From sequence record OP380604.1: a stretch of DNA of 64,000 nucleotides. The stretch is one strand, 5' to 3'. A program made the translations under genes and the position numbers. Positions 3,935-57,028 of the stretch are shown one piece after another. The first letter of the stretch is position 1. Each line of letters starts with the position of its first letter. The notes beneath the pieces were generated by a model. The model was not told where the DNA came from. It made no database searches and saw nothing but the letters and a program-made list of their open reading frames with translations.

Positions 3935-6900
3935 TTAACTAATCCATACGAAATCAACAGATCTGGTTGTTGCGTTTGGTCTGATTTCCAAGAACTCGCC
4001 GTTACCGACTTCAATTCTCAGACGTTTAACTGTTAGCAATTCTTTGATAGTCACATCACCGTTTGCTGTAATAGCTTGCGGAGACGTAATAATCAATTCA
4101 CCAGTCATGTTGTCACCTTTCTTATTTACGCGACTATCAGCAGACTTGGTAACATCATCAACGAGAGTATCGACGTAATCCTTCCGAGTTAAATCGTTAG
4201 GATCTTTTGGTGCAGTTGCCAAAGATTTAACTTGACTTGCAACTGTCATTACGCCGTTTGTGTCAATAGATGTTTGATTGGTAGCATCTGTCATTGAACG
4301 AGGACGCAATCTCAGAGTTCCGTTTGAACCAATAGCAAGTGTTCCGTCTGGATGGGCATACAATCCAGCTTTTTCGGAATCCGGACCAACTTTAATGCTG
4401 AATGCGTTGCCGGCGCCAGCACTAAACGTTGTGTTATTCTGGAATGTCTTGAAACCGGTAATAGTTTCAGCAAAGTTTCCAGTCTTGCGCATATAACGAT
4501 TTTCGGTATAATCCCAACGTGTCAAATGATTAGCGTTAGTTGGATCTTGTCCGCCGTTCAATACATGATTAAAGAAAGATGTTGTTCCGTCACGCGCTAT
4601 TAGCTGACGAATACTAAACACGTCTCCAACTGTAGAACTTATTTGGAATGCACCGTCAAGTGTGTGAACTCCAGCATACCAGCCGTTAGTATTTGTGTTG
4701 TTTTTGAAAGCAATCGCGGTATCTTGTGCGCCGTCTGTTGCTCTAAGTTCCAGACGTACAACTTTGGCTCTTTCGATAAGAGGACTTTCTTTGAAAGTCA
4801 TGAAGCCTGTAATAGTCTGTGCGACGGTACGACGAATCCAATCATCCGCTTTTACTCTTGTTCCGTCTGCGGTGTCCATAGAACGTGAACTTTCAGCAAC
4901 ACCGAGAATAGGCAAATAATGAGACAACGCGGTATTCAATGCTCTTGGACTAACAACGATATTATCATTTGCGTAGTTGCCAATAGGACGAGTTGATCCC
5001 TTAATATCATCACCTTGCCAAACTGTATTTGCGCTTGCGTCATTTGCCAACACACACATCATACCAACACCATAGCGACTTTCTGACATTCTGTGATTTG
5101 CGCTTGTGCGAATTGAATCAAGTACACGAATTGGAGTCATAGCTCTGGTAGCGTCGGTGCCTGCGTCCGATTCTGCTTTAGTTGCAATCTCAATAATACC
5201 AGTCAAAGTCTCACTGGCGACTCTGGCATTAAGCTTTTTCGGCGTAATAACAGCATCGTCGATTGGATTGATCATTGTGTTGCTTTCTGCTTGGGTAGCT
5301 ACTCGCAATGATCCGCGTTGTGTTTCTGTTGCTAGTTTAATATCAAACTTTTGGCCTTTCCAAATCGTTCCGTCTGTAGCCAAACCACTTGACTCTTCAA
5401 CTGTCAGTCGTGTGCCGTCTAGCCATACTTTGTTTGTCAGTGGAGTGATAAAGTAGCGATCATGCAAAACACCGGCATCAACTTCTGCTTGAGTTGCGGT
5501 TTCTGCCAGACCCCAGCGAGTTTCGTTTGCTGTGCGTTTAACAATCGCGTCCGGTGTAACGTGAACGTTATCTCCAGTTGGAGGAGTGTTAGAACTCATT
5601 TCAGCATCGGTAACAGCTCTTGACAGTCCGGTTAGTGATGTAGTAGCTTGTCTACCATGTAGAGTCTTAGCAGTAACGAACAGAGGACCGTTCGCGTGAT
5701 TATCTGTGCCTGCGTTAGCTTCTGCTTGAGTTGCGGTGAATCCCATACCCTGTGAGGTATCAGTTGCTACTTTCTCAAACAGAGTTTTTGGTGTTACGTA
5801 GCGGTAATGTTCATCGAAATCATGAACACCAACACCCTTTGTTCCACGCTCTGCTTGTTTTGCACCGGCTTGGATTACTTGATAAGTAATACCGGTTTGG
5901 GTTTCGGTTGCTTTACGTCCGTCAAGAACTTTTGGAGTAATTGCAGTCTGTGCCCACATTTCACCGGTTCCGCTCATAGCGTTAGCTTGTGCTTGAGTCG
6001 CTACAGTCATGACACCGCGCATTGTCTCGGTAGCCAGTCTGTTGTTGACTTTTTCTGGAGTCATGATAACTCCGTTCCAAGCCTCGTTGTTGCCAGAAGT
6101 TGCTTTACTTTCGGCGTCAGTTGCGATACGAGCGATACCGCGCATTGTCATTGTAGCGATTTTGTTTGCCAATGTTTCTGGTGTAACAAATGCTTCACAA
6201 TCGCGATTTTGTCCGGCACTAATTTGTTCTTTGTTTTTGTTCACTTCCGCTTGGTTAGCGATTGCAGCTAGACCAACAAATGATGTATCATTGCGATCAA
6301 CACGGAAAGGAACAGGAGAGTTGGTAATCAACACCCATGTATCAAGTCCAGTGTTCAGTGCATTTCGGAAGTAAGTGAATTCCCACTGGTGAGAACGTCC
6401 GTCAATAGTAAATGTCTCTGACTTAGTTGTGAACTTAGTTAGATCTTTTACGATATCACGATATTTTGTGACATAAGGAGTTGACAAAGCGTTATCATCT
6501 GGTACAATGTAGTCATTAGCTTGTGCATCCGGAATCTTGAGAACAATCTTAGAACCCTGTACCATATAGCTTGTATCAATGATGAAACTATCACCGTTTG
6601 ATGCATCCTGTGGGAAAGTAACTGTGATTGTATCTGTTGATTTCGCAGCATGAACTGCCAATTTTTCGCCAAGAATCGCGGTGTAATTGGACTCAATCAT
6701 GTTCCAACGAACTGCTTTATCTCCTTCGAAAATTCTCCACTGATTTGTGCGAGCGTCGAAGATGAAATAACCCCATCCAGTTGTGTCGGATTTTACCGAG
6801 TCAACAGGAGTTGCTCCAACTTCGGTCAAAATTTTATGTCCGCTGTTTGGATAAACAAACAACTCAGTTTTGGTTACTGGGTTTAATCCGTCCAAGTCAT

Positions 6901-20862: not shown

Positions 20863-20871
20863 TGAATCAAG

Positions 20872-20895
20872 AATCCCGCTTCGGCGGGATTTTTA
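20872..20895 (+). terminator. Rho-independent terminator
   Basis: AATCCCGC-TTCG-GCGGGATT plus T tract; same sequence at 24563 and 52085. Confidence 0.9.
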
Positions 20896-20910
20896 TTTTC
20901 CAGAAAGTTC

Positions 20911-20938
20911 TTGCATCAAAATCTAGTCCTGTTATTAT
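20911..20938 (+). promoter_or_regulatory. Sigma70-like early promoter
   Basis: TTGCAT-N16-TATTAT. Confidence 0.75.
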
Positions 20939-20973
20939 AGCCACATCGAAACACACCATCTGAGGAAGTTATC

Positions 20974-34585: not shown

Positions 34586-34996
34586 ATGAGTGAATTAGGT
34601 TTTAGAGCATTTGACGAACAAGTTGTTCTCGAATGTAATGCAGCCCGAAAGGGTGAGGAACTGAAATCTGATGCCGGATTGATTCTCGGTGTTAGAAATC
34701 AAGGTGACATTCCTTTGTATGGAACTGTCGTTTCTGTTGGTGAAAACTGTCCAGAAAGTATCAAAGAGTTGATTGGAAAGGACGTTGCGCTGCCGCAAGG
34801 TGGTGGGATTTACAGTAACGTACCTGACCCGCGAATGGCCTACGGGCTTATCCCGCGTAACAGCACAGAAGCACGAATTTTCGTGACTATGCATTACAAA
34901 GGCATTCGTACAATCTATGATGGTAAGCCACAAGGCAAACCCGTAGAACAAAGTGAACAACCGTTCACATCTTCTCTTACTCTTCTGAATCGTTAA
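34586..34996 (+). CDS. 31: GroES-like co-chaperonin gp31
   Basis: RAFDEQVVL, SDAGLILG, GTVVSVG, VPDP and HYKGI motifs. Confidence 0.92.
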   Translation: MSELGFRAFDEQVVLECNAARKGEELKSDAGLILGVRNQGDIPLYGTVVSVGENCPESIKELIGKDVALPQGGGIYSNVPDPRMAYGLIPRNSTEARIFVTMHYKGIRTIYDGKPQGKPVEQSEQPFTSSLTLLNR

Positions 34997-35006
34997 GGAA
35001 AATAAA

Positions 35007-35291
35007 ATGTCTGTAAAAACTTTTGCTGAAACTCTGGTACGTGGTGGTGTTGTTGCTCAACGTCAAGCATGGAATGCCGGTCACGAAAACCAAGGCGCGT
35101 CTATCGACGTTCTGGCTTATGCTCTGGAAGTTGCTTCCGCTCTTCCCAAGAACAAGAAAGCCGTTGAACTGGTAGAATACATCAACCAGTGGGACATGGA
35201 ACAAGGATACGGTCTACGTTTCGCTAAAGAACTGGATAGCACTGTTGTTCGCGGTATCACTACCGAACTGAAAGACTACTTCAAATCCTGA
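35007..35291 (+). CDS. rIII: Lysis inhibition accessory protein RIII
   Basis: QRQAWNAGHENQGASIDV versus T4 QRNAWNNGHENYGASIDV. Confidence 0.9.
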   Translation: MSVKTFAETLVRGGVVAQRQAWNAGHENQGASIDVLAYALEVASALPKNKKAVELVEYINQWDMEQGYGLRFAKELDSTVVRGITTELKDYFKS

Positions 35292-35462
35292 ACTGATCAA
35301 TCACTGACATTCAGAGTCGAACGAGTCGTTGTTAAAGCTAAACCTAGAAAGCTTACGGCTCGTTGGACACTAGACGTCGAAAACATCGAAACTGAATTCG
35401 GTGATGACTGTGTTAAACAACTAATCGAATCTATACAAAAGGAAATTCAAAATGGCTGGTAA
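35292..35462 (+). other. Start-less gp23-like coding segment in frame after the rIII UGA (readthrough extension, non-canonical start or remnant)
   Basis: 56 open codons with no ATG/GTG/TTG; LTFRVERVVVKAKPRKLTARWTL aligns with this phage's gp23 MSFRIDKQVVEAKSRQLKAQYSI. Confidence 0.5.
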
Positions 35463-35883
35463 AAAATCTTCTCGTGGCAAGGGTCACTTCGCAACCTACA
35501 AAACCGCTGGTCTGTTTGTGAAAAACAAGACCCGGGATATCGAGCGTCATGTTGCCTCTAACCCGCAAGATGAAGTTGCTAAGGCAGCTCTGAAAAAGGT
35601 TCCCGCTAAGTCTTCTCGTTGGGGCTATGCCGGTCCGAAGAACCCGAAGAAAGGCGCACAAGAATCTCGTCTGGACGTTGCTCTGACTCGTCTGGTACGC
35701 AAAGCCGAGCGCGTATACAAGTACGTGAAAGATACCGAATCTCTGGTACTGGGCAAGCAAAATCGCATCGTTGATGCCGAAACCCAGCGTACCGAGTTCA
35801 AGTTCAAGCGTCACGCTCCACGTCCGACTGGTGCAGAAACTCAATCACCGGTTACCAAAAAGAAAGTTCGTCGCGGTAAGTGA
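35452..35883 (+). CDS. Highly basic hypothetical protein
   Basis: 143 aa, K/R-rich; SD AAGGA. Confidence 0.75.
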   Translation: MAGKKSSRGKGHFATYKTAGLFVKNKTRDIERHVASNPQDEVAKAALKKVPAKSSRWGYAGPKNPKKGAQESRLDVALTRLVRKAERVYKYVKDTESLVLGKQNRIVDAETQRTEFKFKRHAPRPTGAETQSPVTKKKVRRGK

Positions 35884-35954: not shown

Positions 35955-36161
35955 ATGAAATCGTTGATAATTATTCTCGCGTTTGCTATTGACTTTGCCA
36001 TGGTGAATGCTATGATTGGTATCAGTTATTATAAACAACTCGATTACGAAACATGTTTCGTTTTGGGGTATAGCCTGATCTTCTATGGACTAATTTGTTA
36101 TATAGGAGTTCAAGATACATTCGGTACTCACTTAATGAGATACCACAACCTATTGAGGTAA
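35955..36161 (+). CDS. Small membrane protein
   Basis: Two hydrophobic helices. Confidence 0.6.
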   Translation: MKSLIIILAFAIDFAMVNAMIGISYYKQLDYETCFVLGYSLIFYGLICYIGVQDTFGTHLMRYHNLLR

Positions 36162-55414: not shown

Positions 55415-57028
55415 TTAAACACCAGCTACCAGTACACGACGGAAGAACGCATTCTTACCGAACATGTTGGTGTGTTGCGGCATACCGTTGCTGATCTTAG
55501 CGAACCCTTTATTCTGGGTAGCGTCAGCCATCGGGTGCAGTTTAACACCGTAACGAGTCTTGAAGCCCAGAACAGGTTGGAAGTTCTTAGGATCGGTACC
55601 ACGCAGCGGAGTCAGCGCAACGTATGGGCAGTAGTACAGGCCAGCATCCATTTCAGAAGCGCCTTTGTAACCCACGGTGAAGTAATCTTCAACAGCGTAC
55701 TGATCGATATACACACGATACTTACCAGCCAGAACACCAGCGAACAGGCTAGAAGTGGTGTCGGTGTTCATAGTGGTGTTAGCACCCAGAGCAGCCGGGG
55801 TAACCAGCATGTCGGTGTGACCCAGAGCAGCGGCAACGTTACGTGAACAGATGATGAAGTTACCTTGACCGCGACCGGTTTGACGGGCGATTTCGTTAGC
55901 TTCTTTGTCGATCTGAACTACCAGAGCTTTGTAGCTTTCACCAGCCCAACGAGCACCACGAATATCTTTGGTGTCTTGGAAGTCGAACACACCAGCTTTA
56001 CCGCCGTGCATGTTAGTCCAGCCAGTCTTACCTACTTTAGCAGTAGCGTTAATCCACAGAACCATTTCACGGTTGATTTCGTGCATGATTTCATTAGCCA
56101 GAATGCTAGACAGTTCGCTGTCAGCGTCCAGACCGTGAACCGCGCGCAGGTCTTGTGCCATTTCGATAGAGTATTGAGCTTTCAGTTGGCGAGATTTAGC
56201 TTCAACAACTTGCTTGTCAATACGGAAGGACATTTCGTTCCACTCGTTATCGGTAGAACCGTTGAAACCTTGTTGCAGTTCAGCAAAAGCGGTAGCCATT
56301 GCAGAGCTGGTTTCTACAGCGTAACCGTTAGCCAGCAGCCACTTGTAAGCCAGACCGGCTTCAACTTGATCGGCAGGCAGAGCGTCGATAGCATAGTCCT
56401 TGATAAACTGAACAGTCTTGGTACCAGCTTGAACACCGGTAGCAGCTTCGATGTGCAGTTTAGCGAACGCGCCGGTAGCGAATGCAGTACCACGGGCAAA
56501 CTCAGCGATATCTTGAGCAGCGCCACGACCGGAGAAATCAGCGTCTGGGCCGAAAGTCGGGTGGAAAGCTTCGCGAGCGTTAGCGTCTTGAGAGTTGCCG
56601 CCGTAAATGGCACGCAGAGTAAACACTTGACCGGTAGAGCTAGTCATTGGCTGAACACCGCAAATATCAAACGCAATCAGTTGCGGAATAGCGCGACGCA
56701 CCAGACCCATAACAGCAGGACCAACGTTGGTGATAGAACCAGTAGTTTCACCAGATGCAATCTTAGCAGCATCGTAGCCGTGATCACCGCCGATGTTGGC
56801 TTCTGCCAGTGCTTTTTCTTTAGCTTCGTTGATACGACCTTTAACGTCGATCATGGAGTTAACAACTACCTGATCAGTATATACACCACCTTCGTTATGT
56901 GCAATATCTTCGTCCTGGTTTTCGAAGATACGAGCGACGATATCCTTACGCTTCATAGAAGCAATAGCAGGCATACCTTCACTTTCTACCAGCGGCTGCC
57001 ATTTTTTCAGGAGAGATTTCTTAGACAT
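55415..57028 (-). CDS. 23: Major capsid protein gp23
   Basis: LIAFDICGVQPM, EMSFRIDKQVVEAKSRQLKA and FQPVLGFKTRYG. Confidence 0.98.
   Translation of the reverse strand: MSKKSLLKKWQPLVESEGMPAIASMKRKDIVARIFENQDEDIAHNEGGVYTDQVVVNSMIDVKGRINEAKEKALAEANIGGDHGYDAAKIASGETTGSITNVGPAVMGLVRRAIPQLIAFDICGVQPMTSSTGQVFTLRAIYGGNSQDANAREAFHPTFGPDADFSGRGAAQDIAEFARGTAFATGAFAKLHIEAATGVQAGTKTVQFIKDYAIDALPADQVEAGLAYKWLLANGYAVETSSAMATAFAELQQGFNGSTDNEWNEMSFRIDKQVVEAKSRQLKAQYSIEMAQDLRAVHGLDADSELSSILANEIMHEINREMVLWINATAKVGKTGWTNMHGGKAGVFDFQDTKDIRGARWAGESYKALVVQIDKEANEIARQTGRGQGNFIICSRNVAAALGHTDMLVTPAALGANTTMNTDTTSSLFAGVLAGKYRVYIDQYAVEDYFTVGYKGASEMDAGLYYCPYVALTPLRGTDPKNFQPVLGFKTRYGVKLHPMADATQNKGFAKISNGMPQHTNMFGKNAFFRRVLVAGV

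Follow-up and report, generated by a model that had tools for sequence, protein, structure and literature searches.

A putative capsid-fragment mini-gene behind the rIII stop codon of a T4-like Aeromonas phage

Introduction

[quoted passage not shown] The original prediction for this DNA regarded the segment as a candidate readthrough extension of RIII, which could tie lysis timing to the status of the capsid or chaperonin (gp31) or serve as a decoy for capsid-sensing defences. The locus raises the question of how the segment is to be read: as the tail of an RIII fusion protein, as a small gene of its own, as the relic of such a gene, or as an RNA element whose open frame is incidental. The window analysed here is a stretch of 64,000 nucleotides from record OP380604.1; positions refer to this stretch, and features are on its plus strand unless stated otherwise.

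The rIII locus and the open frame behind its stop codon

The region between positions 34586 and 35900 was 100% identical to Aeromonas phage avDM12-TAAL (OP380604.1), a T4-like phage, and showed identities of 98.8% with Ah1, 90% with Aeh1, and approximately 83% with PX29 and AsFcp, all of which are T4-like Straboviridae. The gene order at the locus is T4-like (cd, 31.1, 31, rIII, and small genes towards 30.3). The upstream neighbour, at 34586-34996, is a homologue of gene 31, encoding the GroES-like co-chaperonin for gp23 (phrog_931, E = 1.2e-34; Pfam Cpn10, E = 2.8e-4), and it bears the same annotation in relatives. The rIII gene itself (35007-35291) encodes the lysis inhibition accessory protein of 94 aa (phrog_1457, E = 4e-27; PF27932 in relatives) and ends in TGA at 35289-35291 with A as the next base (TCC TGA A). 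Residues 4-89 of this 94-aa ORF cover the phrog_1457 profile in full, and the capsid-like extension is not part of the conserved RIII architecture (PF27932 / phrog_1457). The downstream gene, at 35452-35883, encodes a basic protein of 143 aa (DUF7022 / phrog_18475, E = 1.1e-79; PF22887 in relatives), and its Shine-Dalgarno sequence (SD; AAGGAA) and ATG (35452), read from the sequence at 35439-35454, lie within the 3' end of the segment.

Some features of the neighbouring genes were observed in passing. The 143-aa downstream protein is very basic, with both ends rich in Lys/Arg, and its first residues resemble those of T4 gp30.9, which is encoded at the same place after rIII in T4. In the PX29-type loci L050, L052, L054, L055, and L058, a gene of approximately 330 aa with a CapR domain (PF21817) was found between 31.1 and gene 31; neither the window nor Ah1 or Aeh1 has it, and in the PX29-type phages it may represent a mobile insertion. 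The gene 31 call in PX29 is longer (155 aa).

After the rIII TGA, the frame stays open for 56 codons (35292-35459) and is closed by TAA at 35460-35462, the overlap with the downstream gene, from its ATG at 35452, being 11 nt. The window sequence contains no in-frame ATG, GTG, or TTG in 35292-35459 and no purine-rich SD upstream of 35304. The original description of a 56-codon frame behind TGA-A with neither start nor SD, ending in the start region of the next gene, was therefore exact. In alignments, the frame begins with four codons (T D Q S; 35292-35303) that link the rIII stop to a candidate start; the fourth of these varies (TCA, GCA, GAA), and Aeh1 carries a 3-nt deletion in this linker. 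The candidate non-canonical start, located by allele alignments, is CTG at 35304-35306, the counterpart of the Met in the gp23 motif MSFRID. From this codon, a putative capsid-fragment mini-ORF of 52 codons plus TAA (LTFRVERVVVKAKPRKLTARWTLDVENIETEFGDDCVKQLIESIQKEIQNGW) extends over 35304-35462, supported by the coding signature and dN/dS values given below.

The mini-ORF is unannotated in all public records, and the gene callers applied to the metagenome contigs were also silent in this 160-nt gap, skipping it even in an allele that starts with ATG. If it is a gene, it is a conserved one that was missed in every public annotation of the phage group because it has no canonical start. An open frame in a gap is, as a caveat, common in this genome, where, of the 13 gaps that reach 100 nt or more, 8 are open over 85% or more of their length. 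Six annotation gaps of OP380604.1 (22780-23208, 24559-24750, 35910-36158, 45764-45922, 46203-46436, and 48068-48466) are nearly filled by open frames with canonical starts, for example a hydrophobic 68-aa ORF at 35955-36161, and these are probably further unannotated small genes. The gap at 20865-20960 of the window is the sole other one whose longest open stretch (32 codons) is without ATG, GTG, and TTG.

Homology of the segment to the major capsid protein

The phage's own gp23 (537 aa) is encoded on the minus strand at 55415-57028. Nine identities between the segment and residues 266-289 of this protein had been reported in the original prediction; the count was correct, and the matching region as a whole comprises gp23 residues 266-315 (56233-56085, minus strand), as determined by HMM and alignment with the mini-ORF. 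A single BLASTP comparison of the segment with gp23 gave E = 5, which is not significant and is too weak alone, and it was therefore replaced by profile tests. The matches to Pfam PF07068 (Gp23; E = 0.004, 17.1 bits with the cut-off at 24.4, over positions 134-170 of the 376 in the profile) and to PHROG 138 ('major head protein'; E = 0.0076) were both sub-threshold. With an HMM made from 121 gp23 proteins, the segment ranked third among the 1026 stop-to-stop ORFs of the window, behind gp23 and gp24, scoring 7 bits above noise and aligning to gp23 family positions 248-272. An HMM from the small homologues only (described below) matched the gp23 of the window at E = 2.3e-10 and that of five phage genomes at about 1e-11, and the top non-self tblastn matches of the segment included annotated capsid genes. 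Transitive support came from the homologues P0128 (52.7 bits), P0133 (40.4), and P0132 (32.1), which pass the Pfam Gp23 gathering score at the same profile positions. The profile tests agree with the predicted major-capsid-like character of the segment, which intermediate sequences link to Gp23, and by these sequence comparisons its homology to gp23 is real.

Other searches were negative or were set aside. The segment profile retrieved only a chance YbaK match in a PDB sequence search, and a word-index protein search with the segment alignment gave no match. A metagenome pattern scan yielded one unrelated coiled-coil ORF (L014), which was rejected as chance, and the ESM Atlas returned only unnamed clusters whose recognition was below the reliable level and which were not used.

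Two elements of gp23 are represented in the mini-ORF. The HMM alignment covers a strand motif at 35304-35378, homologous to I-domain linker 2 (the E-loop return strand, 'msfridkqvveaksrqlkaqysiel'), and a predicted helix at 35403-35450 (ORF residues 34-49) aligns with the start of the spine helix in the gp23 + gp24 alignment. AlphaFold2 modelled the 52-aa peptide as a hairpin and a helix with low confidence (pLDDT 53). At the protein level, conservation is greatest in the C-terminal half of the segment, which has synonymous changes. In the T4 capsid structure, I-domain linker 2 is the equivalent of the HK97 E-loop return strand and makes intercapsomer contacts, and the spine helix carries three gp31-bypass substitutions (PMC9546572). 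Relative to gp23 and gp24 (PF07068, PHROG 138), approximately 50 residues are homologous, namely the linker 2 strand with its AK.R.L.A motif and the start of the spine helix, whereas the A domain, the I domain, the N-arm, and the P-domain sheet are absent. With only 52 residues, about a tenth of gp23, the peptide would therefore have no HK97 fold and form no capsomer. The mini-ORF also differs from gp23 in location, lying in the early-type rIII region and not in the head gene cluster, and it is closer to some foreign gp23 (AKSRKLKARWTPE, 40% identity) than to that of its own phage (29%). [quoted passage not shown]

Coding signature and recent changes

The frame is kept in Ah1, Aeh1, PX29, AsFcp, and contigs from Logan/ENA metagenomes, which together represent 7 distinct alleles from 3-4 lineages. 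Compared with the most divergent allele, that of Aeh1, the segment shows 37 differences, distributed 12/6/19 over the three codon positions. This frame has 10 synonymous codon changes; the other two frames, which contain stops, have 3 and 1. When the same substitutions were placed at random, at least 35 of the 52 residues remained identical in a stop-free frame in 0.1% of the trials (permutation P = 0.001). The dN/dS ratio, which had been proposed along with the original prediction as a check on the segment, was 0.35-0.43 against Aeh1 (NG86), indicating purifying selection on this long branch; the values for rIII are 0.10-0.25. Such position-biased, synonymous-rich changes indicate that the segment is, or until recently was, translated in this frame.

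Among close relatives, the same check gave a different picture. The alleles of the window, Ah1, L043, X3, and the PX29 group differ by approximately 12 nonsynonymous and 3 synonymous changes, where the neutral expectation is 3.5 to 1, so that dN/dS is about 1. Between the window and Ah1, the segment has 4 nonsynonymous and 0 synonymous changes, and one codon occurs in three states (Cys, Gly, and Val) in the close alleles. In addition, an internal TGG is changed to TGA in the metagenome allele L055, and 1 nt is inserted near the 3' end of the ORF in X3; both are low-coverage metagenome assemblies, and these disruptions may be errors. The dN/dS of about 1 would reflect either relaxed constraint, with gene decay after loss of the ATG, or diversifying selection. 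The segment is missing in phiAS5, phiWae14, and T4, all of which keep rIII and end it in TAA, and no similarity to the segment was found in T4 gp30.9 or in the T4 rIII-30.9 spacer.

Start codon alleles and stand-alone homologues

At 35304, the window, Ah1, and the PX29 group share CTG, Aeh1 has ATA, and ATG occurs solely in L043 and X3, the three codons being single-base neighbours. In L043, a 36.8-kb Logan contig from two samples, the sequence CAA GAA ATG GCA corresponds to CAA TCA CTG ACA of the window, and its ATG gives a normal 52-aa ORF beginning MAFRV. X3, a contig from an independent wastewater run, shares these changes, among them C to A at 35304. A CTG start at 35304 had been mentioned in the original prediction as an alternative to readthrough, and ATG was found at exactly that codon in these two alleles. 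The rIII TGA, on the other hand, is kept in every carrier and is nowhere replaced by a sense codon; a small ATG-started gene in relatives, which had been named as evidence against a fusion, was found in part, namely in L043 and X3.

A search with the segment profile against 1.84 billion representatives gave eight proteins at E <= 0.001 (2.8e-5 to 8.9e-4), which were small proteins and two very long ones and nothing else. The distant homologues (P0128-P0134 and L064/L065) are stand-alone small ORFs with their own ATG, and none is fused to RIII. P0129, P0130, and P0133 begin within approximately ten residues upstream of an AK[PS]RKL motif, and the N-termini of P0128, P0132, P0134, and the L064/L065 ORF are longer and do not resemble RIII. 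In P0129, P0130, P0133, and P0134, whose contexts were fetched, there is an overlap of 1-4 nt between the ORF and the stop of the upstream gene, which, judged from the sequence, is the usual layout of translational coupling. These homologues resemble the mini-ORF in the AK[PS]RKL[TK]A.W motif followed by an acidic helix and in small size, and they lie among early or replication-type genes, apparently coupled to the upstream gene. They differ from the window copy in that they have their own ATG, several are approximately 110 aa long with an extra C-terminal part, and none stands beside rIII. The window mini-ORF thus fits the stand-alone set by motif, helix, and size, but not by a canonical start of its own. 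With the same near-even odds as the mini-gene reading, the mini-ORF may be one member of a sparse and unnamed group of capsid-fragment ORFs that stand alone in T4-like phages. The literature searched contained no description of free gp23-fragment proteins.

Two T4-like metagenomic contigs each carry two ORFs of approximately 110 aa that correspond to different pieces of gp23 (L059:813-1139 and 4001-4336; L060:1490-1831 and 2287-2619). At the start of one ORF in each pair stands the motif IAxDLxGxQPM, which belongs to gp23 residues 113-140 (BLASTP 1e-9) and thus to the first-quarter region where Gol has been reported (PMC3014915); the second ORF opens with the linker-2/spine-helix motif (2e-9). 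A weak resemblance to gp23 435-470 was seen at the C-terminus of P0133 (E = 1.7 in a single comparison), with which the C-termini of the other ORFs of about 110 aa align. On these similarities, the ORFs of this size may be 'mini capsid proteins'.

Recombination at the 3' end of rIII

The rIII gene of the window has a dS of 0.12 against Aeh1 and 0.59 against PX29, whereas the values for the segment are reversed, at 0.58 and 0.056. In a sliding comparison, the block 35185-35455, comprising the 3' end of rIII and the mini-ORF, was 93-97% identical to the PX29-type sequence between flanks of approximately 78%. In Aeh1, the block 35250-35600 (the mini-ORF and the first third of the next gene) was 65-78% identical between flanks of 93-100%. 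The breakpoints near the 3' end of rIII indicate that rIII and the segment have separate histories, and by its sequence the 3' end of rIII looks like a recombination hot spot.

A possible RNA hairpin within the segment

A possible RNA hairpin inside the ORF, at 35316-35368, consists of a 13-bp stem with an inner 5-bp stem (fold z-score -2.66) and starts 9 nt after the CTG and 24 nt after the rIII stop. Across the 7 alleles, 95% of the cells are paired, and two compensatory pairs were found, both from Aeh1; 36 of 500 shuffles matched the observed covariation score, so that the covariation is weak evidence. No Rfam family, SECIS included, matched at the segment, and no late promoter (TATAAATA) was found near it.

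It is very improbable that the segment is non-coding and owes its conservation to an RNA element of this kind, serving mRNA stability or processing or the regulation of the next gene, with the open frame incidental. The fold score and the compensatory pairs would suit such an element, as would the overlap of the 3' end of the segment with the ribosome-binding site of the next gene. However, the hairpin spans only a third of the segment, the greatest protein-level conservation, with synonymous changes, lies in the C-terminal half, and the homology to gp23 and to the small proteins is at the protein level; the lack of an Rfam match and the shuffled covariation scores point the same way.

Discussion

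The reading that best accounts for these results is that the segment is a separate 52-codon capsid-fragment mini-gene (35304-35462), re-initiated at CTG after rIII, and not a readthrough tail of RIII; we assign it a probability of about 0.47. It is supported by the coding frame conserved in 7 alleles with third-position-biased changes (P = 0.001), by ATG at the codon aligned to 35304 in L043 and X3, by homologues that stand alone and are never joined to RIII, by the differing histories of rIII and the segment with breakpoints near the 3' end of rIII, and by a pattern of presence and absence (missing in phiAS5, phiWae14, and T4) that is typical of an accessory gene. Against it, the window copy has neither a canonical start nor an SD, and bacteria initiate very poorly at CTG. 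The M/L/I at the 'start' position might instead be a hydrophobic residue that derives from the Met of gp23 and has been conserved, and gene callers leave the ORF uncalled even where it has ATG. The mini-ORF lies in frame behind rIII TGA-A in every carrier, with a sole linker indel of 3 nt, and a separate gene requires neither. The dN/dS of about 1 in the close cluster, together with the internal TGA of L055 and the 1-nt insertion of X3, also counts against a working gene: with near-neutral changes and two broken alleles, the gene may no longer be constrained. A rather unlikely explanation builds on this last point and holds that the segment is a decaying relic, which was once ATG-started and functional, whose start became CTG, and whose ORF is drifting, effectively unexpressed but not yet broken. 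Besides the ratio of approximately 12 to 3 in the close cluster, near the neutral 3.5 to 1, the 4 to 0 between the window and Ah1, and the two broken natural alleles, a relic would be consistent with the probability of 0.24 that a frame with 37 substitutions stays stop-free by chance, and with the loss of the segment in phiAS5 and T4 at no visible cost. Yet the long branch to Aeh1, which itself has no ATG, clearly shows purifying selection (dN/dS 0.35, 10 synonymous changes), and the CTG allele is widespread, its block being 93-97% identical between two phage genera with flanks at approximately 78%. Both disrupted alleles may be errors of low-coverage metagenome contigs, and a dN/dS near 1 is also expected of an arms-race gene.

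Programmed readthrough, in which a small proportion of ribosomes would decode the rIII UGA, most likely as Trp, to give a 151-aa RIII-capsid-fragment fusion as the functional form in this lineage, is not the best-supported reading, and we consider it still more doubtful than decay. Of the original proposal, the leaky-type TGA-A and the start-less in-frame segment held, while the ATG alleles, the stand-alone homologues, and the separate histories spoke against a fusion. In its favour, every carrier has the segment in frame behind TGA followed by A, never TAA or TAG, rIII genes without the segment end in TAA, and the sole indel between the stop and the motif is 3 nt. The absence of a canonical start and SD in the window and the stable hairpin downstream of the stop would also suit readthrough, and the nonsense allele of L055 (TGG to TGA) would itself be leaky to Trp. 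However, TGA makes up 35% of the stops in this genome, and TGA-A is the commonest TGA context (12 of 27); therefore, the identity and context of the stop carry little information. All carriers share ancestry, and the correlation between stop and segment therefore represents one or two events. The hairpin begins 24 nt after the stop, and known readthrough stimulators lie nearer the stop than this. The penultimate residue of RIII is Lys, which favours efficient UGA termination in E. coli. No UCA suppressor tRNA was found among the approximately 25 tRNAs of the phage (Trp-CCA is present), and the genome shows no change of genetic code. The A9C and G24A changes in tRNA-Trp that raise UGA reading (PMC13092985) are absent from the phage tRNA-Trp(CCA) (L016:1421-1492, outside the window). 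ATG alleles occur at 35304, all distant homologues are independent ORFs, and rIII and the segment recombine independently. The likeness to the Q-beta A1 protein lies in a UGA followed by A and an in-frame downstream segment that, in this genome, has no start of its own. Q-beta, however, is an RNA phage whose extension has no independent start in any relative, whereas in two relatives of the present phage the segment begins with ATG, and its homologues elsewhere are genes in their own right.

Two further observations were made on the tRNA genes of the phage. Atop the anticodon stem, its tRNA-Trp(CCA) has a G27.U43 wobble in place of the C27-G43 of E. coli. Within the phage tRNA cluster, ARAGORN called one tRNA-like gene (L034:1286-1361; OP380604.1 at approximately 171026-171098, outside the window) 'tRNA-???' with anticodon 'tg'; this gene scored 47.6 bits with the Rfam tRNA model, and its anticodon loop around UUUGAU apparently has 6 or 8 nt instead of 7.

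If the segment is a separate mini-gene, ribosomes terminating at the rIII TGA would re-initiate 12 nt downstream at the CTG. Such re-initiation by ribosomes finishing rIII would be needed because the mini-ORF follows the rIII stop by 12 nt and has no SD, and the hairpin at 35316-35368 might conceivably help to position them. Since the start is CTG here and ATG in two relatives, the output in this phage is probably low, and on our reading the mini-gene is here either weakly expressed or in decay. Small phage genes that lack an SD and are translationally coupled are known, such as gene VII of f1 and the lysis gene of MS2, and the mini-ORF is like them in lying close behind an upstream stop and depending on terminating ribosomes; by this analogy, initiation at the CTG would occur by translational coupling. 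Coupled phage genes of this type use AUG (GUG in some), and re-initiation at CUG 12 nt after a stop would differ from them in being unusual. Reports on non-canonical re-initiation (PMC4648390) and stop context (PMC9841425) concern eukaryotes and were not taken as bacterial evidence.

The product of the mini-gene, modelled as a strand and a helix, would mimic a very conserved element of the capsid protein and could compete for whatever binds that element, be it a host capsid sensor, a chaperone, or the capsid protein itself. Capsid proteins trigger bacterial defence systems including Lit/Gol and CapRel (PMC3014915, PMC9712102), and free capsid-like peptides are therefore plausible tools of counter-defence or of interference with assembly. 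The sporadic spread, recombinational mobility, fast recent evolution, and early accessory position of the mini-gene fit an accessory or counter-defence role. The Gol peptide of T4 gp23, the activator of the Lit protease, is likewise a short conserved stretch of gp23; it acts alone as a peptide recognised by other proteins and is a precedent for an active capsid fragment, but unlike the mini-ORF it is not a separate gene. A decoy of the Gol/Lit type was considered and rejected because the copied part lies elsewhere in gp23: the Gol region is the first quarter of gp23 (PMC3014915), and the segment aligns to residues 266-315 of 537.

A wider and unlikely proposal is that T4-like phages repeatedly carve conserved pieces of gp23 (the linker-2/spine-helix element in this phage, the first-quarter motif in other contigs) into free mini-proteins. 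These would act as decoys or competitors for factors that bind unassembled capsid protein, such as host immune sensors, the chaperonin, or the capsid assembly of a rival phage, and would be delivered here by non-AUG re-initiation and/or as a minor RIII readthrough fusion.

In summary, the mini-gene is, as it stands, an unannotated variant of the known Gp23 family in an unusual expression context, and it establishes no new principle. It offers a test case for distinguishing non-AUG or coupled initiation from UGA readthrough in a dsDNA phage, and it points to a scattered, undescribed set of small proteins that would copy fragments of the T4-type capsid. Should the segment be a relic, the locus would nonetheless document the origin of such mini-genes, their spread by recombination, and their demise.
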